Assembly (NCBI GenBank): GCA_977020255.1
Contig: CDROCS010000506.1
Coordinates: forward strand, 3,472,001 to 3,536,000
Source: Obrimoposthia wandeli
Taxonomy: Eukaryota
DNA: 64,000 nt
Direction: 5' to 3'
Positions 8,482 to 45,199 of this stretch are shown piece by piece. The notes under the pieces were generated by a model that saw only the letters and a list, made by a program, of their open reading frames with translations, was not told the origin of the DNA and ran no database searches. Position 1 is the first letter of the stretch, and each line of letters begins with the position of its first letter. Made by a program: the position numbers and the translations under genes.

Positions 8482-9723
8482 ATGGAATTGGACGTAAGAC
8501 AAACTGTGATTGTGGCGATTTTGGTGCTGTTTATAGGTAAGTTCCTGACACGCAAAGTCGCTTTTTTACAAGAATATAATATCCCCGAGCCAGTTTCTGG
8601 CGGCTTAATTGCGTCTATTGTTTTTGCTATTATTTATGGCGCATTTGATATTGAATTACAATTTTCATTAGCGGTGCGAGATACGTTATTGATTGTGTTC
8701 TTCACTATTATTGGCTTGTCCTCACGATTCTCAACGCTGCTTAAAGGCGGTAAACCGTTAATTATCTTACTGGTGATCGCGGTCATTTATTTGTTCTTGC
8801 AAAACTTCACAGGCTTAACCGTTGCACAGTTTACCCAGCAATTACCGGAAGTCGGTATTATTGGTGGTTCAGTGTCGCTTAGTGGTGGGCACGGGACTGC
8901 GATTGCCTGGGCGCCGCTGTTTGTCGAGAAATATAATATCAGTAACGCGATGGAAATTGGTATTGCGTGTGCGACCTTTGGCCTGATCCTTGGCGGTGTT
9001 ATTGGTGGTCCGATTGCTAAATATTTAATCAGCCATTATAAGCTAGAACCGAGTAAAGAACCTGAGCTGACAGTGGGTACTCTACATCAGGCTACGCAGC
9101 ATCAAGCTAAGCAGACTAAACAAATACAGGCGAACACTGCAGCACCGATTGATTATCACCATATGCTTAATTCGATATTGATTATCAGTATCAGTATTGG
9201 CTTAGGACTCGGGCTTAATGTCATTATCGGCAACCTAGGCTTACATTTACCTGAGTTTGTTACTTGCTTGTTTGCTGGCATTATCGTCATCAATTTAGGC
9301 CCGTTAATATTACCTAAGTTGACGTGGCCTGAGCGCAGTCGTTCGTTAGCTTTAATTTCTGACTTGAGTTTGGGCTTGTTTCTCGCCATGTCATTAATGA
9401 GTTTACAGCTGTGGACATTAGGCGGGCTAGGTGGGCCAATATTAATCATGCTTGCTGCGCAGGTACTGATTGTGACTGGCTTTGTTATCTTTGTGGTCTT
9501 CCCGCTAATGGGTAAAGATTATGATGCAGCTGTGATGTCAGCTGGTTATGCGGGATTGGCGTTAGGCGCAACGCCGACAGCTATTGCGAATATGACAGCA
9601 GTAACCGAGAAGTTTGGTGCCTCGGCAAAAGCCTTTGTCGTTGTACCGCTGGTGGGCGCATTTTTTATTGATATTGCCAATGCCCTGATTATTCAATTTT
9701 TGTTGGATATCTTTGCGTCGTAG
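8482..9723 (+). CDS. gltS: Sodium/glutamate symporter
   Basis: NIPEPVSGG, LSGGHGTAIAW, GLALGATPTAIANM and FVVVPLVGAFFID. Confidence 0.9.
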   Translation: MELDVRQTVIVAILVLFIGKFLTRKVAFLQEYNIPEPVSGGLIASIVFAIIYGAFDIELQFSLAVRDTLLIVFFTIIGLSSRFSTLLKGGKPLIILLVIAVIYLFLQNFTGLTVAQFTQQLPEVGIIGGSVSLSGGHGTAIAWAPLFVEKYNISNAMEIGIACATFGLILGGVIGGPIAKYLISHYKLEPSKEPELTVGTLHQATQHQAKQTKQIQANTAAPIDYHHMLNSILIISISIGLGLGLNVIIGNLGLHLPEFVTCLFAGIIVINLGPLILPKLTWPERSRSLALISDLSLGLFLAMSLMSLQLWTLGGLGGPILIMLAAQVLIVTGFVIFVVFPLMGKDYDAAVMSAGYAGLALGATPTAIANMTAVTEKFGASAKAFVVVPLVGAFFIDIANALIIQFLLDIFAS

Positions 9724-9737
9724 CTAGATAGCAGGGT

Positions 9738-9914
9738 TTATAAGTGTTTCTCTGTTTCTGCTATCAGATTTCTTATACGTCTGGATTTGTCGTCGTTAAT
9801 ATGGGGTAGATGGGGTTCGAGGCTAACTTGTTTAACTTTTTCAAGTGCTTGGATCACTTCTTCTTTGGCTTTATCTAGGCTTTCTTTACTTGGCGTATTC
9901 ATAGTGCTTAACAT
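9738..9914 (-). CDS. Putative small helical protein, 58 aa (not in ORF track)
   Basis: Hand translation: MLSTMNTPSKESLDKAKEEVIQALEKVKQVSLEPHLPHINDDKSRRIRNLIAETEKHL. No clear Shine-Dalgarno; alternative start at 9902. Confidence 0.4.
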   Translation of the reverse strand: MLSTMNTPSKESLDKAKEEVIQALEKVKQVSLEPHLPHINDDKSRRIRNLIAETEKHL

Positions 9915-10033
9915 GTTGTTTAGGGTCTTTTATTTAACAATATAAACGCACATGCTTTCAATAATAATGCACTAAGATAACGTTGATATTTCTTTTGCCT
10001 TTCTTATTTCCCTTATTTTTTCTTCTTTTTTTA

Positions 10034-19855: not shown

Positions 19856-21307
19856 CTAACAACCAGGGCCACAATCCATACAATGTTTAATCATGTCTGG
19901 ACCTAAGTGTAGTTTCGCGTTGAGATCTCGTAATGCTGTTCTCACACCTTCTTCGATAACAGGGTGGTAGAATGGCATGTCTAACATTTCCGACACGGTC
20001 ATTTTTTGTTGATGTGCCCATGCTAATAAATGCGCTAAGTGCTCTGCATCTGGGCCAATCATTTCTGCGCCTAAGAATAAACCTGTGCCGTGTTCTGCAT
20101 ACACATGTAATAAGCCTTTATTACGCAGCATGACACGTGAACGACCTTGGTTTTCGAATGACACGCTACCTGTTTCAAAACAACCACAGTTACCTAAACG
20201 CGTAATTATCTGTTTGTATGTTTCACCGACCATGGCAATTTGTGGGTCGGTAAATACTGCCGAGATAACGCTACGGCGTAGACCTGCTCGAATTTGTGGG
20301 AAACGTCCGGCGTTATCACCAGCAATTCTAGCTTGGTCCGCCGCTTCGTGTAATAGCGGAATTTGATTACTAGCATCACCAGAAATAAAGATACTTTCTA
20401 CCGATGTTTGCATGGTGTAGTAATCCGCTGTTGGTACGCCACGCTCATCTAATTCAAGGCTAGTATTTTGCAGACCAATTTTATCGACATTTGGACGGCG
20501 GCCTGTCGCTGCAAGTACGTATTCAACATTCACTGTTTGTAGTGCTTGGTGTTCATCTAAGTATTTAATTTCAACATGGTCACCTTGGCGCTTCATGCTT
20601 TCTACTTTAACGTCGGCATCAAGATAGAATTCTTCATTAAAAGATTTATTCGCATAAGCCATCACTTCAGGGTCTGTTAATGGACCGACTTGACCACCTA
20701 AGCCGAACATTATCACGTCGACGCCAAGGCGTTTTAGTGATTGCCCTAATTCTAAACCGATAACACCAGGGCCAAATACGGCAATTGATTTAGGTAAATC
20801 GTCCCACTCAAAGACATCATCGTTGATCACTAAGCGGTCGCCTAATTCGTTCCATACTGCAGGGTAAGCTGGGCGTGAGCCAGTCGCAATGACAATACGT
20901 TTGGCATTAATTTGTGTGTGGTCGCCAACGAGTAAAGTATTGTTGTTTAAAAAGCTAGCGTAACCAGCTATTTTATCTTGTTCAGGGATCTCATCGACGC
21001 CCTCTACAACAAAACCAACAAAGCGATCGCGTTCACTTTTAACACGCGCCATGACTTCAACGCCGTTAATCAAGGTTTCGCCTTGTGGGTGGATACCAAA
21101 ACCTGGTGCTTTGGCAATGTGATGTACACTTTCTGCCGCGGCAATAAGCAGTTTTGATGGCATGCAACCAACACGAGCACACGTTGTACCATATGGACCA
21201 CCTTCGATGATCACGACACTGTCTGAATGTAATTTTGCTGCGCGATATGCGCCAAGTCCTGCTGTACCACCACCAATTACTGCGACATCTACATTTATCA
21301 TATTCAT
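19856..21307 (-). CDS. Flavoprotein disulfide reductase (annotated dihydrolipoyl dehydrogenase, PRK06292 type)
   Basis: IGGGTAG, GTTCARVGCMPSK redox disulfide, PFYHPVIEE and C-terminal CMDCGPGC. Confidence 0.8.
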   Translation of the reverse strand: MNMINVDVAVIGGGTAGLGAYRAAKLHSDSVVIIEGGPYGTTCARVGCMPSKLLIAAAESVHHIAKAPGFGIHPQGETLINGVEVMARVKSERDRFVGFVVEGVDEIPEQDKIAGYASFLNNNTLLVGDHTQINAKRIVIATGSRPAYPAVWNELGDRLVINDDVFEWDDLPKSIAVFGPGVIGLELGQSLKRLGVDVIMFGLGGQVGPLTDPEVMAYANKSFNEEFYLDADVKVESMKRQGDHVEIKYLDEHQALQTVNVEYVLAATGRRPNVDKIGLQNTSLELDERGVPTADYYTMQTSVESIFISGDASNQIPLLHEAADQARIAGDNAGRFPQIRAGLRRSVISAVFTDPQIAMVGETYKQIITRLGNCGCFETGSVSFENQGRSRVMLRNKGLLHVYAEHGTGLFLGAEMIGPDAEHLAHLLAWAHQQKMTVSEMLDMPFYHPVIEEGVRTALRDLNAKLHLGPDMIKHCMDCGPGC

Positions 21308-21436
21308 TATTAAGCCTTAGAAAGCGTCTGCGAAAACGGTTGTCGTTTGTCGCGCTTATATTTAGTGTAAATTTGGTTACGAAGACGAGCTTCGTGTTGA
21401 TGTAGCTATTATGCAAAACTTATGTGTATAGGCATA

Positions 21437-21473
21437 ATCGATTAAATAGCTAACTTTGATAGTTAATATCTAT
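21437..21473 (-). promoter_or_regulatory. Candidate OxyR binding site abutting the -35
   Basis: Minus strand reads ATAG-N7-CTAT-N7-AGCT-N7-CGAT (12/16 match to consensus). It is followed directly by a weak -35 (TATGCC), a 17-nt spacer and -10 CATAAT at 21413-21408. Confidence 0.6.
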
Positions 21474-21599
21474 TGGTGGTATCTATGGGTATGTTTGATT
21501 TCATTGGCGCTAGCTATTACGGGGGATTCTTATGATTATTACGGCTGTGTTCGTTAATTAAACGGTCATAACAGAACGAGTTAATTCATTTAATTCAAA

Positions 21600-21613
21600 T
21601 TGATGTATATCAT
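21600..21613 (+). promoter_or_regulatory. FNR-like box upstream of MCP gene
   Basis: TTGAT-GTAT-ATCAT, one mismatch to TTGAT-N4-ATCAA. Confidence 0.5.
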
Positions 21614-21719
21614 TATGTTTTATAATTGTTTATACAATTAACAAATAAATAGGTATTATCCTCAGCTATATGTTGTGGCATGTTGATAAGCGTGTTGCCA
21701 TTTTTACAATTCAGGAAGT

Positions 21720-23702
21720 GTGATGAAATTTTCAGATATCTCGTTTAAACATAAAATTATTATGTTATTGGCTTTACCTATGTTGGGTTTTTTGTGGTTG
21801 AGTGCCTCTTCACTTTCACAAAGTGTAGCGATCAATAACGAAATGTCTGTTTTAACCCAGTACACACAGCTTTCTGTTGAGTACAGTGAATTAGTCCATG
21901 AGATCCAAAAAGAACGTGGCATGACCGCTGGGTTCATTGGTTCGAATGGCGCTAAATTTAGCAGTAAATTGCGTAAGCAACGTGCTGACACAGATGCAAA
22001 GCATGCTCAATTAATGCGTTTCTTACAGAATAACGCTGTGTCTGACCGTAAAATTAAGCAATTACAAACGAGCATTCAACAAGATCTTGCAATGCTGAAA
22101 GGTATTCGTAATAAAGTCGATTCGCAGAATATTCAATTAGGGGCGGCACTCGGTTATTACACTAAGTTAAATGCCAAGCTATTGAGTGTATCTGGCTTGA
22201 TTGTTGATATGAGTTCTGATGCGAGCATCACGGCTGAGACAGTGGCTTATTATAATTTTTTACAGGGTAAAGAACGTGCCGGCATTGAACGTGCGGTATT
22301 GAGTAATACTTTTTCTAAAGATCACTTCGGTCCCGGTAACTTTGTTAAATTTATTGGCTTAGTGATTGAGCAAGAAACCTATTTTGCTAATTTTAAAACC
22401 TTTGCAACAGAGAGCAATAAGCAGTTCTTTGAACAGCAGTTAAATAGCGCAGCGGCTAAAGAAGTGCTGGCGTTAAGAACGATAGCTAAAACTAAATCAA
22501 CGGACTTTAATGTCGATGCCGAGTATTGGTTTACACAATCTAGCGTGCGAATTGGCCAGTTAAAAACGATCCAGGATGCGCTAGAGTTATCATTGTTGAA
22601 TTTGGTTGATAGTAATCGTGATAACGCGATGACAACGCTGATGAGAAACATTGTATTTAGTCTGTTGATTATAGTGATCTCTGCGATGATTAGTTTTGTT
22701 ACCATTCGTGATTTATTGGCGCGGGTAAAAGAGCTGATGAATGTGATGACCGAAGTACGTGATAACAATGACCTAACGGTACAAACACAACTTGCAGGTA
22801 ATAGCGAACTCGGGCAGATCGCAACGGCATTAAATCTAACGTTATCGCAATTCTCAGGGGCGATGGATAACATTTCAACCTCGAGTATTACCCTCGCATC
22901 GGCAGCCGAAGAGACGGCTCAAACCTGTGCATATAGCTCTACATCATTAATCGAACAGCAAGACGGTATCAGCTTGATTGCGACTGCGATTGAAGAGTTA
23001 TCTGCAACAGTAAAAGAAGTCGCACATAATACCCAGTTAACGGCTGATTCGGCAAAAGAAGTCGATAAACAAGCGACTGATGGTTACGAGATAGTACAGC
23101 AATCATCACTGTCAATAGAAACACTCGCAAGTGAGATTGATAGTTTAGCGCAACGTATTACCAACTTACATCACAGCAGCAACAACATTACCAATATGGT
23201 CGATGTCATCAAATCGGTTGCAGACCAAACTAACTTATTAGCGCTAAATGCGGCGATTGAAGCTGCGCGTGCGGGTGAGCAAGGGCGTGGTTTTGCAGTT
23301 GTGGCTGACGAGGTACGTACATTAGCGAAACGTACCCAAGAATCAACGGCAGAAATTGAAAGCTTTATTGGTGCATTACAAGCGGATGCAAATGCGGCCT
23401 TTAACGTCATTGAAGTGAGCCAAAGTAAAGCGGCTGATGCGGTTGCTAAGTCGAGAAACGTAGCACAAACATTGCAAGATATTACCACAGCAGTAAACCA
23501 GATCTTTGCGATGACAGAACAAGTAGCTACTGCGATTGAAGAGCAGTCGGTGGTGACGCAAGATGTCGCTGAAAACATTGTTAACGTCAAACAAAAATCA
23601 ATGGAGTCGGCAACGGGCGCGAATCAAATTGCCATGACAGCAAGAGAACAAGCGCAATTAGCCACTTCATTACAAGATGTGGCTAGAGTCTTTAAGATTT
23701 AG
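21720..23702 (+). CDS. Methyl-accepting chemotaxis protein with NIT (nitrate/nitrite-sensing) periplasmic domain
   Basis: VHEIQKERG and [12 protein letters not shown] motifs, HAMP domain, and [30 protein letters not shown]. Confidence 0.85.
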
Positions 23703-23712
23703 GCATTACGTA

Positions 23713-23740
23713 TTAACAATTAATAATTAATAATTAATAA
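23713..23740. repeat. 7-bp tandem repeat immediately 5' of lipoprotein RBS
   Basis: TTAACAA TTAATAA TTAATAA TTAATAA followed by GAGG. Confidence 0.7.
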
Positions 23741-23755
23741 GAGGTTAGGGTAAAC

Positions 23756-24313
23756 ATGATAAAGAAAATGAGACTGATTGGATTGGCGTTAGTTGCTGTT
23801 GTCATGAGTGGTTGTGCGACTGTGCAGTTACCACCTGCGCAGCAAGCGTTAGTCGACAATAATACAACGCTTTATACGCAAGTAGGTATGTGGACTGAAA
23901 AAGACAATGTGATTGCAACTAACTACAAACGTGGCGAACATATTCCCGTTAACTCTGTAGTGCAAATTACTGATATTAATGCCGCGACAGTAACCTTTAA
24001 TTATGACGGTCGTAGTATTACGCTGAAGAATATTGAGAAATACACCAAAGTAGATGTAGCTGGATTGATGGCTCGTACTTTCGCTGTGCAGCCAGTTAAT
24101 TTAACGCAATTTAGTGCATTAGAAAAAACAGCAATTGAGAAAGGTGATGTGGTTATTGGCATGACGAAAGATGCGGTGATTATCAGCCGTGGTTTTCCAC
24201 CTGCACATCGCACCGCTAATCTAAAACTAGATAGCTGGAGATTTTGGCAAAATCGATTCGGTACGATTGTTTATGAATTTGAGCAAGGTAAAGTATCAAA
24301 CATAGTTAAGTAG
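23756..24313 (+). CDS. Lipoprotein with SmpA/OmlA-like C-terminal domain
   Basis: Lipobox VMSG-C and C-terminal GMTKDAV...FPP...W.FW...FEQGKV. Confidence 0.65.
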   Translation: MIKKMRLIGLALVAVVMSGCATVQLPPAQQALVDNNTTLYTQVGMWTEKDNVIATNYKRGEHIPVNSVVQITDINAATVTFNYDGRSITLKNIEKYTKVDVAGLMARTFAVQPVNLTQFSALEKTAIEKGDVVIGMTKDAVIISRGFPPAHRTANLKLDSWRFWQNRFGTIVYEFEQGKVSNIVK

Positions 24314-24345
24314 AAAGCATAGTTAAATAGAAAATATAGTTAAGT
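24301..24345. repeat. 17-bp tandem duplication of gene 3' end
   Basis: CATAGTTAAGTAGAAAG / CATAGTTAAATAGAAAA / TATAGTTAAGT. Confidence 0.75.
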
Positions 24346-24373
24346 CGTATTTAGAGCGCTTAACAATACGTAT

Positions 24374-24408
24374 AAATAAAAAGGAAGCATGTCGCTTCCT
24401 TTTTATTT
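24374..24408 (+). terminator. Intrinsic terminator
   Basis: AAATAAAAAGGAAGC-ATGTC-GCTTCCTTTTTATTT. Confidence 0.8.
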
Positions 24409-24552
24409 TTATTAAATTGAATATAATACGGCATAGTCGTGGGGTGACTGGTTAGGCAGTAACCAACGACTTGCTTAACCTGTACTTGTGCGGTAAATTC
24501 CCTATCCTTAATTAACCAGCCAATATCACCTTCTAGAGATTATGAATCGTTA

Positions 24553-25737
24553 ATGGAACCCATCCCTGTCGTCTTGCTAGACTTGTTTACTATCACTATT
24601 TTTACTGCGATAGGATTGTCATTTTTAGCTGTCATCATGTTGTGTACTTGGCTTAGCAACCGTCGTTATGATGGGGTTGGTTATTGGCTTGTCGCCTCTT
24701 TACTGATGTTGGCTTATAGCTCTATCATGGCTGAGCAATTATGGCTATTTAAGTTAGAGGGTTATGCTGGTCATACTTGGCTTAATGTCATCCGTCCCAA
24801 TATATTACTCTGCTTAGCGGTTTGCCTTATCGCCCATGGTTTTCATCGTTTCCTACAAATAAAACAATCGTTATTATGGCTCTACGCGATCCAGTGCTTA
24901 CTGATAGTGCCTTTTTATGTATACGGTTTAACCTTTGAGTTATTACCACTGTATACAACGGTTTTGACGACTGTATCCACGAGTATTAGTTTTCTTTTTG
25001 TCTCTCGTTATTTAATCAGTTATCAAGCCAAGCAATATGGTATGACGCGCGTTATTTGTCTGTTTACCTGTGGTTTATCCTTGCTGTTAAGTGTTGTAAA
25101 GGTAGTGATGTTAGTACAAGAAGACCCTTTACTTAATTGCGTTGAGATCACGACGGCGATTGCGTGTATTAATATGCTAATGACGCAGTGTTTTCTTACA
25201 TTCTGTTATTTGATGCTCTGTACCCAGCGTAATGCTTTTTCATTACAGCATATGTCATTTACTGATCCGCTTGCTAATATTTACAATCGCCGTGGTTATC
25301 AACATGCTATTGCGGCTTTAGTCCCGCATAAAGAAGCGGCCGTGATGATTTTGGATATAGATCATTTTAAGCATGTTAATGATGAATATGGTCATGCGAT
25401 GGGGGATTTAGTGATTAAAGATATCGCTAATATTATTGCTAGAGCCTGTGGTTCAATGTGTGTTTATGCACGTACTGGTGGTGAAGAGTTTAGTATTTAT
25501 TCACCGCTAATATCAGCCAGTAAAATAGAGAGTTTAGGGGAAGAGATTCGTCTAGCTATAATGGAACATACTACTGTTAAAGCAGCGCTAGCGATAAAGG
25601 TAACGGCCAGTATCGGCATTAGTGTCGGTCAAAGCGTCAACATCTTCGCCTTGGAAGAAGAAGCTGATAAAGCCTTGTATCAAGCAAAACGAGATGGTCG
25701 TAATTGTACTGTGATGCAGTTATCGATGGCGGGTTAA
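24553..25737 (+). CDS. Multi-TM diguanylate cyclase
   Basis: About 7 TM helices, then DPLANIYNRR, DIDHFKHVND.YGH..GD and RTGGEEF; no RxxD I-site. Confidence 0.88.
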   Translation: MEPIPVVLLDLFTITIFTAIGLSFLAVIMLCTWLSNRRYDGVGYWLVASLLMLAYSSIMAEQLWLFKLEGYAGHTWLNVIRPNILLCLAVCLIAHGFHRFLQIKQSLLWLYAIQCLLIVPFYVYGLTFELLPLYTTVLTTVSTSISFLFVSRYLISYQAKQYGMTRVICLFTCGLSLLLSVVKVVMLVQEDPLLNCVEITTAIACINMLMTQCFLTFCYLMLCTQRNAFSLQHMSFTDPLANIYNRRGYQHAIAALVPHKEAAVMILDIDHFKHVNDEYGHAMGDLVIKDIANIIARACGSMCVYARTGGEEFSIYSPLISASKIESLGEEIRLAIMEHTTVKAALAIKVTASIGISVGQSVNIFALEEEADKALYQAKRDGRNCTVMQLSMAG

Positions 25738-25776
25738 GTGGCTAGTTAATACTGAATAGCTGGCACGTTATTAACA

Positions 25777-25824
25777 CTAAAATACAGACGAAAAAAAAGA
25801 GCTACTTATAGCTCTTTTTTGCAT
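25777..25824. repeat. 48-bp direct repeat copy 1, containing torZ terminator
   Basis: CTAAAATACAGACGAAAAAAAAGAGCTACTTATAGCTCTTTTTTGCAT; 47/48 identical to 29836-29883. Confidence 0.95.
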
Positions 25825-25840
25825 TAACGATAGTTTTATA

Positions 25841-28288
25841 TTATGCGTTTAATGGTGGTGTAAAGGCCGTTAAAGTCGGTGCAATGCCGGTATACTTTTC
25901 AATTTTAACTAATGATGAATTTGCTGCACAACCATTAGCAAGTTGTGAAGTCGGAATATCACTGGTTAGTACGTTCGGGTTACCATTTTTACAAATACCC
26001 AGTAGTTTATCCTGATCTAGCCAAGCACCTTCATGAATACAAACAGATCCTTGTTTGATAATGTTTGCCACTAATGCGCCTACAAGAACTTCACCACGTT
26101 GGTTGAATGCTCGCACTAAATCACCACTCTTTATCCCACGAGCAGCTGCGTCAGTTGGGTGTATGGTAATAGGTTCACGGTTAGCTATCGCATATTGTTC
26201 ACGCAATTTGGCATAATTTAACTGGCTGTGTAAACGATGTGCAGAATGTGATGTCATCAACTGCAATTCACCATTTTTGGCATTTCCGATCCACTCTGTT
26301 GGTGCTAACCATGTCGGGTGAGGAGGGCAGTCTGCGTAACCGTAACCCTCGATAGTTTTAGAGTAGATTTCAATCTTACCACTTGGTGTGCCGAGTGGGT
26401 TCATAATGGGATCTTTACGGAAACCAGCATGACGAACAAACTGTTCATTTTTCTTATTGATTTTCATTTCAATCAATTCATTCTTTTGCCAGAATGAACC
26501 AAACTTAGGCATACGTACACGTGCTTTTACTGCGCCTTTTTTAGCTTGATCGTAAAACCCTTTTAGCCAATCCATTTCTGTTTTGTTTTCAGTGTAGACA
26601 TTGCGGCCACCGGGTTTAATCAATTCAGCCATATCAGCGAACACATCAAAGTCATTACGTGATTCAAATTGAGGTTCTACAACTTGCTTCATTGGAATAA
26701 GATGTCTGTTACTGTAATCACCTGTCATTGTCATATCATTTCGTTCAAATGATGTAGTAATTGGCAATACGATATCGGCATGTTTTGCTGCGGCAGTCCA
26801 GTAAGGTTCTGAAATAACGACTAGATCTGGTTTCTGCCATGCTTTAATCAAACGATTAGAATCTTGGTGATGGGTGAAGTTACCACCGCCTGCCCACCAA
26901 ATCATTTTAATTTCAGGGAAAGAAAGTTCATGACCATTATGTTGGAATTTTTTATGTGGTGACTCAAGTGCTTCAACGATACGAGCAACAGGGAAACTTT
27001 TGACTGCACCAGACACAGCCCAATCATTACCAGCAGATGAACCGCCGCCAAGACTAGATGAAATGGCTGGCAATACACCGCCATCACGAGTCGGGCTACC
27101 ACCGTTTGAGTAATGGTAAGATAGACCGAAACCACCACCTTTAAGACCAATTTGGCCAAGCATAGATGCAAGTGTTGCAATCATCCAATGTTTTTGTTCG
27201 CCATATTGTTGGCGTTGCATACCCCAACCAGCCATCAACATTGTGCGGTTTTTACTAAATATATCTGCTAATGCTTCAAGTTGTTTAACAGACACACCAC
27301 AAATGTTTTCTGCCCATTCTGCTGTTTTAGCAACACCGTCTGATTTACCTAATAAATAATCTTCAAATTTATCATAACCAGATGTATATTTAGCGAGGAA
27401 ATCTACATCATGTAGTTTTTTAGCAACTAAGATATTAGCAATACCTAGCATCATAGCAACGTCTGTGCCTGGATGTGGTGCAACCCATAATGCTTTATCA
27501 CCAAAAAATTCAACGGTTTCTGATTTCATTGGGTCAATAGCAATAATTGTTTTGCCCGAATGTTTCAAAGTATTAAAAAACTCTATACCGGCTTCATCTG
27601 TTGACGTCCATGCTATTTTCAGCGTGTTCAATGGGTTTATACCCCACATAACAACAACATCACTGCTTTCTAAAATAACAGGGTAAGTTGTTTGCTGTTC
27701 ATAAACTTCAATCGAACCCATTACGTGCGGCATAATTACTTGCGCTGCACCTGTTGAGTAATCACCTAGGTGACCAGAATAACCGCCAGCCATGCTCATA
27801 TAACGCTGTAATAATGTTTGTGCTTTATGCAATACACCGCTTGAACGCCAACCGTAAGAGCCAGCAAAGATAGCTTCTGGACCATGTTCAGTACGAATTC
27901 GAGATTGTTGTTCATGGATTAACTTGTATGCTTCATCCCAAGTTACACGAACAAATTCATCATTACCGCGTTTACCATCGGATTTAGTTGGCGATGCAAG
28001 GTAACCTTTACGAACCATTGGGTATTTAACACGTGCTTTTGTATGTACTTGATCTGCTGCGGTTGTTTGTAAGCTGTTTGGTACTGTTTTGGCTAATGCC
28101 CCTTTTGATGAAATAATACGTCCATCTTTGGTTTTTACTTGTATTGCACCCCAGTGAGCTGCTGTAAGAATAGGGGAGTCTTTGCCTTTCGCTGCAAATG
28201 CGGGTAACGGTGTAACTGACATAATTGCAGCAGCACTTGTTGTTACTGCTGCGCCTTTAAGAAATCCACGACGAGAAAATTCGTTCAT
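25841..28288 (-). CDS. torZ: Periplasmic molybdoenzyme TMAO/biotin-sulfoxide reductase TorZ
   Basis: Tat signal [28 protein letters not shown] and [22 protein letters not shown] closely match E. coli TorZ as recalled. Confidence 0.85.
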
Positions 28289-28374
28289 TAGTTTATCCCT
28301 TATTAATTTTATTTGGTGTCATATTTTTTGGAAAATAAATAGCCAATAATCACTTGATGTATTGGCTATATTAA

Positions 28375-29469
28375 TTAGTGTTTAACCATATCTTTTGCGT
28401 ATGCTTGGAAATATTTAGTTAATATTTCAAGATCTTCGTCAGATATATCTGTTCGTTCGCCCATGCCTTTAGCCACAGGTCCCCATGCATTAACAGTGAA
28501 ATGGTTAGCGCCAATTTTGGCGTGACAGCCTGAACAATAAACGGTGTCAAGCTGCTCTGCGTAGTTCCATAACGGTGTTATATTACTTAGCACTTGTGCA
28601 TCGATGTCAGCAATCAAGCTCGCGCTACGCCAGTTATTACCGTATTCATCTTCTTTGAAGTCACCGATAGTTAATGCTGCTTGTCCTTTTTCACTTAATG
28701 TCGCAACAATTGAACGTTGGCCATTTCCAGAATATAAAACGCGTTCAGCACCTTGCATTTGGAAGGCATTGATCTGTACTTTTCTGTTGTTACCCTCGGT
28801 TTCAATAACGGTTAATTGTGTCGCTGGGTTGATAGAACCAAAGTCGCCCATCGAAATCACAGCAACTGGGTAAACTGAGGTAGCGGTGTCATTCGTTTCT
28901 TGTGTTTTATTTAATAAGTTATCAAATGCTTCACTGTCCATTTCGGCTTCTGGTGGGAAATGGGCAACACCTTTGTGGCAATCGATACATGTTTGCCCAT
29001 TTTCTTTGGCAAATTCGTGCATCTTCACGGCATCTTCAGATTGCTCAAATGAGTCCATCGCATCACGAGCATGGCAAGAGCGGCATGTTACTGAGTCATT
29101 AGCTCGCATCTGTTCCCAGACTGTTTCAGCCATCGCCATGCGATGATCTTCATATTTTTCTTCAGTGTCGATTTTTCCTGTAACGAACTCATGGTAAATG
29201 TCTTTAGACGCGATTATTTTGGTGATGACATAGTCGATAGGATTACTTGGGATATGACAATCGGCACATTCAGCGCGAATACCTTTGGCGTTACTAAAGT
29301 GGATAGAACCTTGATACTCTTCGTAAGGAATTTGCATTGTGTGACAAGATATACAGAATTCAGTTGATGATGTTTTTTTCATTACGTAAGCGGTTCCGCC
29401 TAACGTTAACCAGCCGAGCACTATGGCAACAAGTAAACAAGCTGCAAAATAACGCTTTTTAATCTTCAT
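28375..29469 (-). CDS. torY: Pentaheme membrane-anchored cytochrome c TorY (NapC/NirT family)
   Basis: N-terminal TM and five CxxCH motifs (CISCH, CADCH, CRSCH, CIDCH, CSGCH); 364 aa. Confidence 0.85.
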   Translation of the reverse strand: MKIKKRYFAACLLVAIVLGWLTLGGTAYVMKKTSSTEFCISCHTMQIPYEEYQGSIHFSNAKGIRAECADCHIPSNPIDYVITKIIASKDIYHEFVTGKIDTEEKYEDHRMAMAETVWEQMRANDSVTCRSCHARDAMDSFEQSEDAVKMHEFAKENGQTCIDCHKGVAHFPPEAEMDSEAFDNLLNKTQETNDTATSVYPVAVISMGDFGSINPATQLTVIETEGNNRKVQINAFQMQGAERVLYSGNGQRSIVATLSEKGQAALTIGDFKEDEYGNNWRSASLIADIDAQVLSNITPLWNYAEQLDTVYCSGCHAKIGANHFTVNAWGPVAKGMGERTDISDEDLEILTKYFQAYAKDMVKH

Positions 29470-29498
29470 TTTTATCTCGATATAACAGTATAATTATT

Positions 29499-29547
29499 TC
29501 GTCAAACCATATACCGCTTTGTGAGTACTACTTTTGATGTATATCAA
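29499..29547 (-). promoter_or_regulatory. Class-II FNR-dependent promoter of torYZ
   Basis: Perfect TTGAT-GTAT-ATCAA at 29534-29547. A -10 TATGGT at 29511-29506 places the box centre at -41.5. Confidence 0.75.
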
Positions 29548-29765
29548 TACTAGAGCATTGATTTGAATAATAATAAATTAATTATATTATGTTAATTTTT
29601 TGGGTGGTGAAGGTGTGAGTTCAAGCTATTGAATTTTAAGTATGATTTTTTGTAATAGCTTTTTGTAATCGATTTTTGTAGCTTTGTTTTTAAGTTGTAT
29701 GGTTATCAGGCCATTGAGTCATGAATCTAATTATTGGATATTGAATGAACAGGCGTAGCTATTGG

Positions 29766-29798
29766 GATAGAGAGATAGAGATAGAGATAGAGATAGAG
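29766..29798. repeat. (GATAGA)n hexanucleotide microsatellite
   Basis: Four perfect units at 29774-29797 plus one unit at 29766. Confidence 0.85.
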
Positions 29799-29835
29799 CG
29801 GGTGTTAAGGTCAAGCGTGGGCAAACGACTAAATG

Positions 29836-29883
29836 CTAAAATGCAGACGAAAAAAAAGAGCTACTTATAGCTCTTTTTTGCAT
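29836..29883. repeat. 48-bp direct repeat copy 2, containing crr terminator
   Basis: CTAAAATGCAGACGAAAAAAAAGAGCTACTTATAGCTCTTTTTTGCAT. Confidence 0.95.
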
Positions 29884-29926
29884 ACCTAGGTTATTGTTAA
29901 GAACAAGTCTTTAATAACGTTAAGTA

Positions 29927-30439
29927 CTAGTCCTTAATAACTTTAAGAACAATAGTTTCGCCTAGTACAACTGAACCAGAGAATTTTTCCATGCTCTTAA
30001 TTTCATCCATGTTTGAGATGATGCATGGTGTAATTACTGATTTAGCTTTAGCTTTCAATAACTCAAGATCGAATTCAATGATGGTTTCACCAGCTTTGAT
30101 ATGTTGACCTTCTTCAGCGATACGAGTAAAGCCTTCACCGCGTAATTCAACAGTGTCTAGACCGAAATGCACTAGAACTTCTAGGCCTTCGTCAGAACGA
30201 ATTGCGAATGCGTGGTTAGTTTCGTAAATTTTTACGATCTCACCTGTTACTGGAGCAACTAGTTTGTTACCAGTTGGGTTGATAGCGATACCGTCACCAA
30301 CAATTTTCTCAGCAAAGATAACATCTGGCACATCTTCGATAGCAACGATTTCACCGGCAAGTGGAGAAACAATGTGTAGCGTATTGCTGTCATTACTGTC
30401 GTCTGAAACCAGTTTTTTTAATTTATCGAATAATCCCAT
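29927..30439 (-). CDS. crr: PTS glucose-specific EIIA
   Basis: MGLFDKLK, DVIFAEKIVGDGIAI and VHFGLDTVELRGEGF. Confidence 0.97.
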   Translation of the reverse strand: MGLFDKLKKLVSDDSNDSNTLHIVSPLAGEIVAIEDVPDVIFAEKIVGDGIAINPTGNKLVAPVTGEIVKIYETNHAFAIRSDEGLEVLVHFGLDTVELRGEGFTRIAEEGQHIKAGETIIEFDLELLKAKAKSVITPCIISNMDEIKSMEKFSGSVVLGETIVLKVIKD

Positions 30440-30560
30440 TTTTAACTCCTAACAATTTGGTAGACATAGTTATTGGTTATTTAAAGTGTGAATAACCAAT
30501 AACTTTACGTTGTCATCATAGCATTATCTTACAGATTAGATGCTATGAAAACTGAAATAA

Positions 30561-32288
30561 TTAGCAAGCAGCGCGTTGCTTAGTGAACTGAGCGATTAAC
30601 TCTTGGATTTCACCTGCAGTTGCACAGCTTAATGCTTGGTCTGCTAACTCTTTAACATCAGCGAAATTAGCATTACGGATTGTTTTCTTCACTTTAGGGA
30701 TTGAGATACCGCTCATTGAGAACTCATCTAAGCCCATACCTAGTAATAGTAGTGTTGCAGTTTCATCACCCGCAAGTTCACCACACATACCCGTCCACTT
30801 GCCTGCAGCATGTGAAGCGTCAATAACCTGTTTAATCAGCGTAAGTACCGCTGGTGTAAGTGGGTTATATAGGTCTGAAATCATTTCGTTACCACGGTCT
30901 ACCGCTAGTGTGTACTGCGTTAGATCGTTAGTACCAATACTAAAGAAGTCTACTTCTTTAATAAGGTGATGCGCAATTGCTGCAGCTGCTGGTGTTTCAA
31001 CCATAACACCTGTTTCCATTGCTGCATCGAATGCGTGACCTTCAGCTGTTAACTCAGCTTTCAGTGTCGCAAGAATGTCCTTAAGTAGACGAATTTCTTC
31101 AACAGAAATAATCATCGGGAACATAATGCGGATTTTACCGAATGCAGAAGCACGTAAGATAGCGCGTAGCTGTGCGTTCATAATTTCTGGACGGTCGAAA
31201 CAGATACGGATCGCGCGCCAACCCAAGAATGGGTTCATTTCTTTTGGTAAGTTTAGGTACGGTAGGTCTTTATCACCACCGATATCCATAGTACGGATGA
31301 TCACTGATTGACCATTCATGCTTTCTGCAACCGCTTTGTATGCTTCAAACTGTTCATCTTCAGTTGGTAAGCTATCACGGTCCATAAATAGGAATTCTGT
31401 ACGGTAAAGACCAACGCCTTCGCCGCCATTACGGATCACACCAGCACAATCTTTTACTGTACCAACGTTACCACATACTTCCACATGCTTACCGTCAAGT
31501 GTGATTGCAGGTAAGTCTTTCATTTTAAGCAGCTCAGCTTTTTCAGCAAGATACTGTGCCTGAGTTGCTTGATATTCTTTGATTACGCTTTCTGATGGGT
31601 TAACAATAACGTTATTGTTAATTGCATCAAGGATTACGAAGTCACCAGATTTGATGATTTCAGTTACGTTACCTGTACCAACAATCGCTGGAAGTTCTAA
31701 TGAACGAGCCATGATTGATGTATGGGCAGTACGGCCACCTAAGTCAGTCACGAAACCTAAGATTTTATCTAGGTTAATCTGTGCTGTTTCTGACGGTGTT
31801 AAGTCGCTTGCGATTAGAATAACTTCATCTTTGATCGCGCTTAATGAAACAATTTCCATACCCAGTGCATTTTTTACGATGCGATTACCGATATCACGGA
31901 AATCTGCAGCACGTTCTCGTAAATAAGGGTCGTCCAATGCAGCCATCATTTCAGCATTTTCTTCAATGATGCTGTGAATAGCAAGATCTGCCGATGCTTT
32001 ATTTTTCTTAATAAAGGTTACGATATCGTCTTCTAGTTCTTCATCTTCTAGTAGCATCATGTGCCCTTCGAAGATTTCAGCTTTCTCATCGCCAAATGTT
32101 TGGCGTGCCATTTCCGTGATAGCTTCAAGCTGTATCGCAGACTTATCCCTAGCAGCTAAAAAGATAGCTATTTGTTCATCGATCTGTGCAGTTTCAATAG
32201 TTTGTTGGTTAAGAACAATTTCTTCGTTAGTGAATAATTGTGCTTTACCAAAAGCAATACCTGGTGAGGCGAGAATGCCTGATATCAT
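30561..32288 (-). CDS. ptsI: PTS enzyme I
   Basis: [34 protein letters not shown] and GMCGELAGD. Confidence 0.97.
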
Positions 32289-32336
32289 AACCTTTCCTTA
32301 CTTCAATACAAAAAATACGTTTATGACAATATGGGT

Positions 32337-32594
32337 CTATTCTAAGATATCCATAAGAGCAACTAGCGCTTCAACAGCCGCTTGCTCGTCAGTACCTTCT
32401 GCTGAAATAGTCATTGTTACACCTTTAGAAAGGCCTAACGTTTGTAATTTAAATAAGCTTGTAGCGCTTGCAGATTTACCGCCAGCTTCAACTGAAACTT
32501 TTGACTCGAATTCTTTTGCTTTTTTCACGAAAAGAGCAGCAGGGCGAGTGTGAAGACCGTTTGGTGCGATAATTACAACTGATTTTTGGTACAT
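32337..32594 (-). CDS. ptsH: Phosphocarrier HPr
   Basis: NGLHTRPAA and [12 protein letters not shown]. Confidence 0.97.
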
Positions 32595-32661
32595 GACTTT
32601 TCCTTAAAAATAACGATTCTAAAAATAGAGGTTTACTATAACCATATATCTAAGTGTAATC

Positions 32662-32682
32662 TAATTTTACAGAGTAAAATAA
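32662..32682. promoter_or_regulatory. Candidate Mlc/NagC (ROK) operator upstream of ptsH
   Basis: Minus strand TTATTTTACTCTGTAAAATTA, a TT-N9-AA dyad with A/T flanks. Confidence 0.55.
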
Positions 32683-32780
32683 CTTTTTTTTATAAAAAAT
32701 ATGGCTATAGATCATGTTTTCGTAAGTTTTACTACAAAACAATGCGATGTAAGTATATTACCCCTAATTCAGGCCATTGT

Positions 32781-32795
32781 TGTAGTTTAATTACA
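32781..32795. promoter_or_regulatory. Candidate HexR box upstream of ptsH
   Basis: TGTA-GTTTAAT-TACA within the larger dyad TTGTTGTA-N7-TACAACAA. Confidence 0.6.
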
Positions 32796-32810
32796 ACAAA
32801 AAGAACAAAG

Positions 32811-32826
32811 TGTGACGGCTATCAAT
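32811..32826. promoter_or_regulatory. Candidate CRP site upstream of ptsH
   Basis: TGTGA-CGGCTA-TCAAT. Confidence 0.45.
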
Positions 32827-32850
32827 AGGAATAAAAAAAATGCTTTGTAC

Positions 32851-32876
32851 AAAAAAAAGCCGCTAGTGCGGCTTTT
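32851..32876 (-). terminator. cysK terminator
   Basis: Minus strand AAAAGCCGCACTAGCGGCTTTTTTTT. Confidence 0.8.
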
Positions 32877-32893
32877 GTTAATCTTGTTAATTT

Positions 32894-32950
32894 ATTGTGA
32901 CTACAACAGCGTCATTGTGACTATTATAGTATCATTGTGATTATTGTTGG
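32894..32950. repeat. Degenerate 20-bp tandem array overlapping cysK stop
   Basis: ATTGTGACTACAACAGCGTC / ATTGTGACTATTATAGTATC / ATTGTGATTATTGTTGG. Confidence 0.65.
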
Positions 32951-33909
32951 AGCTCTTGCTCGGTAAATACACCATCGAATAATGCTGTACTTAAATAACG
33001 TTCACCTGACGATGGTAGGATCACTACGATATTTTTATCTGCGAATTCAGGTAATGCTGCTAAACGTGCTGCAGCAACAACCGCTGCACCAGAAGAAATA
33101 CCCGCTAAGATACCTTCTTCTTTCATTAGACGTTGTGCCATCTCGATAGAATCTTCGTTTGATACTAGCTCAACACGATCAACCATTTCTAAATCTAGGT
33201 TACCAGGGATAAAACCAGCACCAATACCTTGGATCTTATGTGGACCCGGTGTTAATGCTTCACCTGATTTTGCTTGGCTGATAACAGGTGAGTTAGTTGG
33301 TTCAACGGCAACAGACACTAAGTCCTTACCTTTATTTAATTTAATGTAGCGGCTTGTACCTGTAATCGTACCACCAGTACCAACACCAGCCACTAATACA
33401 TCGACTTGACCGTCAGTTGCTTCCCAGATTTCTGGACCGGTTGTTTGTTCATGGATCGCTGGATTAGCTGGATTTTCAAATTGCTGTAATAAAATGGTTG
33501 TTTCAGGACTCGCATCTCGAATCTCAACGGCTTTATCAATTGCGCCTTTCATACCTTTTGCGCCATCAGTCAACACAAGGTTAGCACCTAATGCTTTAAG
33601 TAGCTTACGACGTTCTAGGCTCATCGTGTTTGGCATTGTTAATGTTAGTTTATACCCACGAGCTGCGGCAACAAATGCTAATGCAATACCTGTGTTACCA
33701 CTTGTTGGCTCCACAATCTCAATACCTTCTTTTAAGATACCGTCTTTTTCAGCTTGCCAAATCATGTTGGCACCGATACGGCATTTAACACTGGCACTTG
33801 GATTACGGCTTTCAATTTTTGCAAACACGTTACCTGTAGTAACTCGGTTTAAACGTACTAAAGGTGTATTACCGATAGATAGTGTGTTGTCTTGTAAAAT
33901 TTGGCTCAT
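32941..33909 (-). CDS. cysK: Cysteine synthase A
   Basis: [30 protein letters not shown] and [12 protein letters not shown]. Confidence 0.96.
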
Positions 33910-43240: not shown

Positions 43241-43382
43241 TTTATTTAAAAGACTATTTTGAACACTTAATTTTAGCTCGCGTATTGTTAGTTTTAGCTT
43301 TAATGGTAAAATACGCAGCATCATGTGCTTAACCTTTCGTGGGTTAAGCTAATTAAATAATGTAAAAGGTATTGTGAGACTT

Positions 43383-44795
43383 ATGACTGTTAAGACTCGT
43401 TTTGCACCTAGCCCAACTGGCTACTTGCACGTAGGCGGCGCACGTACAGCGCTTTATTCTTGGTTACATGCAAAAAGCCAAGGTGGTGAATTTGTATTGC
43501 GTATCGAAGATACTGATTTAGAACGTTCTACTCAAGAAGCGGTTGACGCGATCTTAGAAGGCATGAAATGGGCTGGTCTGGATTGGGATGAAGGTCCGTA
43601 TTTCCAAACTCAACGTTTCGATCGTTACAACGAATTAGTTGATCAACTACTTGCAGAAGACAAAGCATACAAATGTTATTGTTCACGTGAGCGTCTTGAT
43701 GAATTACGTGAAAAGCAAATGGCTGAAAAAGAAAGCCCACGTTACGATGGCAAATGTAGCCATGGTGACATTGCCGACACTGGTGCTGATTTCGTTGTGC
43801 GTTTCCGCAATCCGAAAGAAGGTTCTGTTATCGTTGATGACAAGATCCGTGGCAAAGTTGAATTTGCTAACAAAGAATTAGATGACCTAATCATCCGCCG
43901 TACTGACGGTTCACCAACATACAACTTCTGTGTTGTTGTTGATGACTGGGATATGGGCATTACTAATGTTGTTCGTGGTGAAGATCACTTAAACAATACA
44001 CCTCGTCAAATCAACATCTTAAAAGCACTAGGCGCACCTGTTCCACAGTACGCTCACGTTGCTATGATCTTGGGTGATGACGGCGCTAAACTATCTAAGC
44101 GTCATGGCGCTGTAGGTGTTATGCAATACCGTGATGACGGTTACCTACCTGAAGCACTACTAAACTATTTAGTACGTTTAGGTTGGTCACATGGCGATCA
44201 AGAAATCTTCAGCACTGAAGAAATGATCAAACTGTTTAGCTTAGACGATGTAAACAAAGCGCCTTCAGCGTTTAATACAGAGAAGCTACAATGGGTAAAC
44301 CAACATTACATTAAAACACTAGCACCTGAATATGTAGCAACTCACCTAGAGTGGCACATGGCAGACCAAGGCATCGATACGACTAACGGTCCAGCACTAG
44401 CTGAGATTGTTAAAGTACTTGCTGAACGTGCTAAAACACTAAAAGAACTTGCGACTGCTAGCCGTTACTTCTTTGAAGACTATGCTGAATTTGATGCAAC
44501 TGCGGCGAAGAAACATTTACGTCCTGTAGCAAAAGAAGCATTAGTTAAAGTTCAAGAAAAACTAGCTGCGATTGCAGATTGGAGCGATGCTGAAGTATTA
44601 CACGCTGCAATTAACGATACAGCGACTGAACTTGAAGTAGGTATGGGTAAAGTTGGTATGCCGCTACGTGTTGCTATTACTGGTGCCGGTCAATCACCGT
44701 CATTAGATGTAACACTTAAGCTTATCGGCAAAGAACGTAGCCTTGCTGGTATCGACAAAGCGTTAGCATTTATTGCTGCACGTGAAAACGCCTAA
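43383..44795 (+). CDS. gltX: Glutamate--tRNA ligase
   Basis: [14 protein letters not shown] and KLSKR. Confidence 0.97.
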
Positions 44796-44850
44796 CGGTG
44801 TGTAAATAATAACCTTTCTGTCGTTTGGTCGTGATTTTCTATTGTAGATA

Positions 44851-44880
44851 TTGACACCAAAACGGCAGATAGAATATTAT
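44851..44880 (+). promoter_or_regulatory. Sigma70 promoter of tRNA gene
   Basis: TTGACA-N18-TATTAT, followed by the hairpin CTACAGCAGCA-AA-TGCTGCTGTAG in the leader. Confidence 0.55.
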
Positions 44881-44910
44881 CCCTACAGCAGCAAATGCTG
44901 CTGTAGAAAT

Positions 44911-44986
44911 GGGGCCATAGCTCAGTTGGGAGAGCGCGACACTGGCAGTGTCGAGGTCATCGGTTCGATCCCGTTTGGCTCCACCA
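44911..44986 (+). tRNA. tRNA-Ala(GGC)
   Basis: 76-nt cloverleaf with G3:U70, anticodon GGC, TTCGA T-loop and encoded CCA. Confidence 0.96.
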
Positions 44987-45199
44987 TTTCTACTTCTTCA
45001 ATCTAGTTCATCAATTTCAATCTATTTTATTTCTATTCCAGATACATTTCCTACGATTCTAAACCTCACTATTATTTATATTTGAGCTACTGCATCCATA
45101 TAATATGATTAGTGTTTCTATCAAGTTAAGGTTATATTCATCTATCATGTCGTAGACTGCTGACAATTATTAGCCCCTGTAGCACCTTAATGAGTAACT

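Follow-up and report, generated by a model that had tools for sequence, protein, structure and literature searches.

A 64-kb stretch of bacterial chromosome (here called the window) carries a two-gene respiratory operon, torY-torZ (torYZ), between two direct copies of a 48-nt sequence, T, which is a predicted terminator of the adjacent ptsH-ptsI-crr operon. Relatives that do not have the operon at this site carry T there once. We consider it probable that torYZ was gained at a bidirectional terminator shared by two convergent transcription units, that this old event left T on both sides, and that the operon was later lost from some species through the repeats.

The window (G000:C506:3472001-3536000) is part of contig C506 (more than 3.5 Mb) in an assembly (1.35 Gb, 6912 contigs) that as a whole is clearly eukaryotic. 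The Crr protein of the window shares 98% identity with its counterpart in a Moritella genome, and genomes of 13 Moritella species aligned to the region. Contig C506 is a Moritella chromosome inside a eukaryotic host assembly, and the bacterium is an associate or contaminant of the eukaryotic sample. For comparison, window positions 24500-30500 were used as a query against the 13 genomes (one per species, referred to by G numbers such as G001) and the junctions were then extracted; sampling of closer Moritella relatives is limited. The window genome is referred to below as WIN, two metagenome contigs as L244 and L192, and three public sequencing runs as X1, X6 and X17. The metagenome contigs came from a scan with the hairpin pattern of T, which proved too generic, as only 2 of the 80 loci kept were from Moritella: L244 is filled and resembles G004, and L192 is empty. 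Literature searches on Moritella torYZ and on terminator duplication returned nothing on this locus, and the genome paper of M. yayanosii names a trimethylamine N-oxide (TMAO) reductase in general terms only.

The 48-nt repeat

The left and right copies of T (T_L and T_R) lie in the same orientation and are identical at 47 of 48 positions, with a single A/G mismatch at 25784/29843 and an exact common core of 40 nt. Similarity ends at both edges of the repeat and the flanks do not align, as a reading made from the sequence alone (the sequence-only reading) had described. The pair is the only convincing direct repeat of at least 30 nt in the window, where by our own estimate about 1e-17 such pairs would be expected by chance. 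A search of the whole assembly for the core, with up to three mismatches allowed, found exactly two occurrences, and a reversed control found none. T is therefore not a member of a dispersed repeat or terminator family of the REP or MITE type. Each of the other Moritella genomes examined has one T, at this locus, or two (G002).

Each copy contains the arrangement A8-GAGCTA-CTTA-TAGCTC-T6, preceded by a conserved 14-nt 5' part. On the minus strand, AAAAAAGAGCUA-UAAG-UAGCUCUUUUUUUU folds into a hairpin with a 12-bp stem and a 4-nt loop, and an equivalent fold is formed on the plus strand (-13 to -17 kcal/mol, z about -3). The hairpin reported earlier was thus found in both copies and on both strands, in each case followed by a U-run. 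T_L lies 39 nt past the stop codon of a gene for a GGDEF-domain protein and 16 nt past that of torZ, and T_R lies 43 nt past the crr stop codon. Both copies are predicted to act as bidirectional intrinsic (Rho-independent) terminators, to judge from their fold and position. A simple terminator scan missed T, probably because the U-run was counted into the stem, and a search of Rfam returned nothing relevant. Immediately ahead of T_R there is a near-tandem repeat of 8 nt, ACTAAATG and CTAAAATG (29828-29843).

Empty and filled sites in Moritella

The site is empty in 8 of the 13 Moritella genomes (G003, G005, G006, G007, G008, G009, G010 and G012). In these, 116-183 nt separate the GGDEF gene from crr and the two have one T in common, the arrangement that the sequence-only reading had anticipated for relatives without torYZ; the opposite outcome, in which all relatives would keep torYZ here with diverged terminators, did not occur. 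In G003, the best-matching empty site, the sequence to the left of T corresponds to the window flank to the left of T_L, and the sequence to the right of T (ACCTAGGTTATTGTTAAGAAC...) corresponds to the flank to the right of T_R. Because the flanks of the empty site match the outer flanks of the two copies, the proposed insertion at the crr terminator with duplication of the target is supported, with the corrections that the event is old, that T evolves slowly and that the left copy is missing from some carriers.

G002 is filled and has both copies of T. The junction between the cassette and T_R is common to WIN, G002, G004 and L244, as judged from the region upstream of torY, which aligns over its full length up to T_R. 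On the other side, T_L is separated from torZ by about 72 nt with a small hairpin in G002 and by 16 nt only in WIN. In G013 (locus L144; G013:C1:4384000-4400200, 8571-15355), a gene for an IS605-type OrfB/TnpB protein adjoins torZ, torY is shortened to 230 aa, and a gene for a 694-aa chemoreceptor lies between torY and the crr terminator T; torYZ is probably dead in this genome. Other genes adjoin T in G001, and the neighborhood of T is rearranged within the G004 group (G013, G001). The GGDEF orthologue adjoins crr in 10 of the 13 genomes.

A distant TorZ paralogue (39-40% identity) is present in all Moritella genomes. The nearest TorZ proteins outside the genus share 74-76% amino acid identity with TorZ of the window, and the adjacent TorY proteins 68-71%. 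The torYZ genes of other genera lie in unrelated gene neighborhoods, and no flanking repeats were found at the five such loci checked. The duplication therefore belongs to the site and not to the cassette, and the possibility that the repeats are an inherent property of the torYZ cassette was rejected.

More generally, the content of the interval between a pyridine-nucleotide oxidoreductase gene (19856-21307) and crr varies across Moritella species. Genes for chemoreceptors, the GGDEF protein, a peroxiredoxin-glutaredoxin and TnpB, as well as rpiB and torYZ, are found in it, and the crr terminator is its fixed right border. This interval is a local hotspot of gene turnover.

Age of the insertion and slow evolution of T

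Nucleotide identity in torZ, compared with that in 9.1 kb of housekeeping genes, is 83% versus 90% for WIN and G002, 81% versus 88% for WIN and G004, 86% versus 89% for G002 and G004, and 94% versus 96% for G004 and G013. Synonymous divergence (dS) in torZ is 1.10 between WIN and G002 and 1.31 between WIN and G004, and in the GGDEF gene 0.84 and 1.69 for the same pairs. Since torZ has diverged as much as the flanking GGDEF gene and the junction is common to several species, the insertion is ancient and dates back at least to the separation of the carrier species. A recent insertion and recent lateral transfer among the sampled species were both ruled out by these dS and identity values.

The near identity of the two T copies in the window has to be read against the behavior of T elsewhere. 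In a genus-wide alignment there is little change in the stems, in the A- and T-tracts and in most of the 5' part, and the loop varies between distant species. Relative to the single T of G006, T_L of WIN has two changes and T_R has one. Because T itself evolves slowly, identity at 47 of 48 positions does not require a recent duplication, and gene conversion between the copies is not needed to account for it. The two copies in G002 differ at about nine positions and both still form hairpins; the 21 nt following them agree at 12 positions, a weak similarity. The abrupt edges of the repeat may in part show how far constraint extends, and not how far the original duplication reached.

Distribution in the genus and probable precise loss

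Trees of housekeeping genes and of the GGDEF gene agree in placing WIN with G003 and G007, as (WIN,(G003,G007)), beside (G002,G006). They also share (G004,(G013,G001)), a group of G005, G008, G009 and G012, and an isolated G010. The carriers among these genomes are WIN, G002, G004 and G013, and in three subclades they have non-carriers as sisters. G002 and G006, for example, are 92% identical in the GGDEF gene and yet differ in carriage. In the WIN clade the sites of the non-carriers are clean and contain one T, which is what a crossover between T_L and T_R would leave. Most simply, the clean empty sites of G003 and G007 beside WIN, and of G006 beside G002, would be secondary precise losses by this route. 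The sequence-only reading had also proposed that the repeats might permit excision or tandem amplification. Excision fits the patchy distribution, from which we infer it, and there is no evidence at all of tandem amplification.

In ptsI (30561-32288), WIN is 98% identical to G002 in nucleotides (dS 0.10) and 95-96% identical to G003 and G007 (dS 0.19-0.21), unlike in the housekeeping and GGDEF trees, where G003 and G007 are nearer to WIN than G002 is. An old tract of recombination to the crr side of the cassette may account for this pattern. Farther along, positions 43256-44996 are 98% identical to G002:C5:18329-20069, compared with 86-92% for the neighboring segments; this part is either a very conserved gene or the result of a recent exchange.

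Assembly and public sequencing runs

Parts of the stretch were found in 20 public runs from 11 studies, and in no RNA run. Logan contigs (k=31) from four runs contained all four expected pieces, namely GGDEF-to-T, T-to-torZ, torY-to-T and T-to-crr. In X17 the 48-nt unitig of T had a depth of 48.6x, compared with 21-24x for its flanks, and the cassette had the same depth as the flanks. Run X6, from a relative about 96% identical, gave the same GGDEF-T-torZ pieces. In X1 the GGDEF piece had a depth of 115x and torYZ of 77x, which could reflect a mixed population with empty sites, as a hint only. The Logan contigs break inside T, so that alone they prove no gene order and provide no test of excision (a joint skipping 4059 nt). 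They also break at a (GATAGA)n microsatellite within the cassette. As a check against misassembly the reads thus gave the four arms and an approximately twofold depth of T, with the limit that the contigs end in the repeat.

An artefact, in which an empty site and a separate molecule were combined or a collapsed or chimeric join was made at the repeat, could draw on just this, since contigs built from short words allow two pairings of the four arms. The gene order is backed, though, by the independent assembly of G002 and, for the right copy only, by G004 and L244; the cassette depth in X17 and the position of the window within a multi-megabase contig also speak against a false join, the chance of which we put close to nil.

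Genes and features of the locus

The gene identities and the content of the cassette given by the sequence-only reading were confirmed by family models and by scans of open reading frames (ORFs). Between T_L and T_R no real ORF was found besides torY and torZ, and no tyrosine or serine recombinase was found among the ORFs of 19856-33909 scanned with NCBIfam or Pfam. No inverted repeat joining the two cassette ends was found. The GC content of the cassette, 39.7%, matches that of the window, 41%, in keeping with an old arrival.

TorZ matches the BisC family model (TIGR00509, 1135.5 bits against a cut-off of 1017.55). Its score against the TorA equivalog, 875 bits, is under the cut-off of 909, and the protein is not filed as TorA. 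A twin-arginine translocation (TAT) signal is indicated by a model score of 22.6 (cut-off 16.7) and by the RR motif SRRGFLKG. TorY scores 311.8 bits against TIGR02162 (torC), under the equivalog cut-off of 478, and matches the NapC/NirT domain. It has five CXXCH motifs, at residues 39, 68, 129, 161 and 312, in the layout of the TorC family (tetrahaem domain at the N terminus, monohaem domain at the C terminus). TorYZ is predicted to be an N-/S-oxide respiratory system that reduces TMAO or other N- or S-oxides. The genes in the window are intact and under purifying selection: the ratio of nonsynonymous to synonymous divergence of torZ against G002 is about 0.05, which indicates that they are kept by selection.

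The FNR/CRP-type box upstream of torY is the only perfect TTGAT-N4-ATCAA in the window. It is conserved in G002 and has one mismatch in G004 and in L244, which suggests anaerobic control of torYZ by an FNR-type regulator, as a prediction only. In the spacer between torY and torZ, a hairpin (28300-28345, minus strand) is formed by AUAGCCAAUA...UAUUGGCUAU and followed by UUUAUUUU. With z = -2.1 it stands weakly above shuffled sequences, and it may serve as an internal attenuator and so set the ratio of cytochrome to reductase.

Table 1. Positions of features at the torYZ locus in the window.
Feature	Position	Strand	Remarks
GGDEF diguanylate cyclase gene	24553..25737	+	TIGR00254, 116.6 bits; converges on T; left neighbor of empty and filled sites
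T_L, left 48-nt copy	25777..25824	.	Predicted terminator for torZ (-) and GGDEF (+); hairpin core 25791-25820; collinear with the left flank and single T of the empty site
Spacer, T_L to torZ stop codon	25825..25840	-	16 nt; G002 cassette has about 72 nt here with its own small hairpin
torZ-like gene, periplasmic Mo-bisMGD N-/S-oxide reductase	25841..28288	-	Twin-arginine signal; BisC family
torY-torZ spacer	28289..28374	-	10+3-bp hairpin, then U-rich run; possible internal attenuator
torY-like gene, membrane-anchored pentahaem c-type cytochrome (TorC/NapC family)	28375..29469	-	TIGR02162 torC, NapC/NirT domain
Cassette upstream/promoter region	29470..29835	-	366 nt; homologous over full length in WIN, G002, G004 and L244 up to T_R
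FNR/CRP-type box TTGATGTATATCAA	29534..29547	.	Perfect; center about 71 nt upstream of torY ATG
(GATAGA)n-type microsatellite	29766..29798	.	Inside cassette near T_R; expanded relative to G002, absent in G004
T_R, right 48-nt copy	29836..29883	.	Predicted ptsH-ptsI-crr terminator in original right context; hairpin core 29850-29879; right flank as in empty G003 and G006
crr, ptsI, ptsH (general components of the phosphotransferase system)	29927..32594	-	NF006962, NF008382, NF008104; conserved right neighbor

Within the last of these features, crr occupies 29927-30439 (minus strand) and is followed by ptsI and ptsH, and then by cysK. To the left of the locus, a 185-aa ORF (23756-24313) had no NCBIfam or Pfam family match. 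Three copies of a motif of the type AGCATAGTTAAAT, spaced by 17 nt, occur at 24282-24345 between this ORF and the GGDEF gene, and a weak, sub-threshold match to sroE (E = 0.1) was noted at 24360-24410.

Origin of the duplicated terminator

The history that we favor starts from an ancestral Moritella in which the GGDEF gene and the ptsHI-crr operon converged on one bidirectional terminator. This ancestor would have acquired a self-contained torY-torZ operon with its own upstream region and FNR box, the products of which are predicted to be a pentahaem quinol-oxidising cytochrome and a periplasmic molybdenum-dependent N-/S-oxide reductase. The insertion would have left a full T on each side, with the former left surroundings kept at T_L and the former right surroundings at T_R. 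The GGDEF gene, torYZ and ptsHI-crr would then each end at a predicted working terminator, and torYZ would be shielded from read-through of the strongly expressed pts genes. Because no recombinase, terminal inverted repeats or repeat family was found, the likeliest route would be host recombination at or around the palindromic T, either by illegitimate joining or by crossover with incoming T-bearing DNA, and joining by an element-encoded enzyme is less likely. A transposon, an integron and an integrase-bearing element were considered and ruled out, as there are no inverted ends, no recombinase and no second member of a family. The 48-nt repeats would subsequently have been a substrate for RecA-type deletion, giving clean empty sites.

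Several observations weigh against this history. In G004, G013 and L244 the cassette is joined to T on the right in the same way, but T_L is missing; behind torZ they have a different hairpin and U-run that resemble a terminator of the cassette's own. Either the G004 group has lost T_L, or the duplication came later than the insertion. A single gain would require four or five losses, and the same picture would arise if the filled allele had spread laterally through recombination in the flanks, which is possible. The species tree was derived from five housekeeping genes near the locus and was midpoint-rooted, and the node joining G002 and G006 has a support of 58%. Finally, no excision product was found in reads or contigs, with the limit that k=31 contigs cannot bridge an exact repeat of 40 nt.

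The carriers without T_L invite the view that the duplication was a second step. The cassette would first have been inserted beside T, with its own terminator and without duplicating the target, as in the present state of G004, G013 and L244, and the left T would have been added later, in the lineage of WIN and G002. This might have happened by homology-facilitated illegitimate recombination, when the cassette, together with the T-crr-ptsI side, was transferred into a relative with an empty site: the incoming DNA would have paired with its homologue at crr and been joined illegitimately where the resident T ends on the right. The good hairpin and U-run after torZ in clade B carriers that have no T_L, and the remnant hairpin that G002 keeps between T_L and torZ and that WIN has lost, agree with such an order of events. 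T ends in GCAT, which also precedes the 3' region of the cassette in G004 and G013, but a microhomology of 4 nt is weak evidence. The greater similarity of ptsI in WIN to G002 than to nearer relatives hints at exchange on the crr side, yet pts genes have a low dS in every comparison and the signal is small. T_L is exactly in register with the left flank of the empty site, as predicted by a primary duplication of the target, and two events are needed in place of one; we therefore regard this order as rather improbable. The interleaving of filled and empty genomes on the tree could instead reflect gains rather than losses, with the empty site ancestral in each subclade and the T-flanked allele spread among Moritella lineages by transformation or transduction with homologous recombination in GGDEF and crr/ptsI. 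At 90-99% identity across the genus, the flanks, and crr and ptsI in particular, would be good anchors, and the slight incongruence of ptsI points the same way. Against this, the cassette has diverged in step with the neighboring GGDEF gene and with the species, a nearly identical cassette is found in no species pair, and the GGDEF tree agrees with the species tree. We judge repeated gain to be unlikely.

Direct repeats of tens of bases around an insert next to a conserved housekeeping gene, combined with an undamaged empty site of one copy, are also the classic signature of an attachment site, and T is an imperfect palindrome. A site-specific recombinase that was lost, or that acted in trans, might have integrated a circular cassette, the T of which would be attP, at the chromosomal T, which would be attB. 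However, no integrase, transposase or other recombinase lies between or beside the repeats, T occurs at this locus only, torYZ of other genera lacks such repeats, and clade B is without the left copy, which together make this explanation highly improbable. A broader idea about the history that we favor is that the bidirectional crr terminator is a recombinase-free landing pad, at which the palindrome provokes breakage or template switching and operons are gained with duplication of T and later shed cleanly. We would call this a long shot. It fits the cargo, which differs between species (GGDEF, chemoreceptors, peroxiredoxin-glutaredoxin, torYZ), and if true it would make the interval from the oxidoreductase gene to crr a hotspot of cassette exchange.

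Significance and comparison with known systems

The locus and its preserved empty site show how a complete respiratory operon can be added between two convergent genes with neither being disturbed. Duplication of the predicted terminator would let each unit keep its stop signal and shield the newcomer from the highly expressed pts operon. For genome scans there is a warning: nearly identical flanking repeats need not mean a recent insertion if the repeat is a functional element under constraint. That a second TMAO-type reductase occurs patchily in a cold-water, deep-sea and fish-associated genus may bear on the use of TMAO by these bacteria, and the 48-nt repeats are a simple system in which the gain and loss of an operon by host recombination could be measured.

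The operon itself resembles torYZ of Escherichia coli in having torY before torZ, a TorC-type cytochrome with five haem motifs and a TAT-exported molybdoenzyme of the BisC/TorA family, and in having no torD chaperone gene or torTSR regulatory genes in the unit. It differs in that the Moritella proteins fall under the NCBIfam TorA and TorC equivalog cut-offs and in the perfect FNR box upstream of the unit. As to its loss, 48-nt repeats with a 40-nt exact core, 4 kb apart, and clean single-copy sites in sister species are like those of RecA-dependent deletion or amplification between short repeats, with the difference that here no excision or amplification product was observed and the process is deduced from the phylogenetic distribution.

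As in the target-site duplications of transposons, a duplicated target flanks the insert, and as with Tn7 at the glmS terminator, the landing was in the terminator region of a housekeeping operon and no gene was damaged. Transposon target-site duplications are 2-14 nt long, whereas the duplication here is 48 nt, and terminal inverted repeats and a transposase are absent. The closest likeness is to genomic islands or islets that duplicate their attachment site, such as those at tRNA gene 3' ends: the insert lies by a conserved gene between direct repeats of tens of bases, the function of the target is kept through the duplication, relatives have a one-copy empty site, and the distribution is patchy. 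Flanking repeats and an empty site, as expected of an integrase-borne island, were both found at the torYZ locus, while a recombinase gene was not. Moreover, the target is a predicted bidirectional terminator and not the end of a tRNA gene, the cargo is only 4 kb, one operon with its promoter region, T is found nowhere else in the genome, and some carriers are without one of the repeats. The torYZ locus is thus a variant of the known repeat-flanked gene islets, unusual in having no mobility gene and in that the duplicated target is a predicted two-way terminator.

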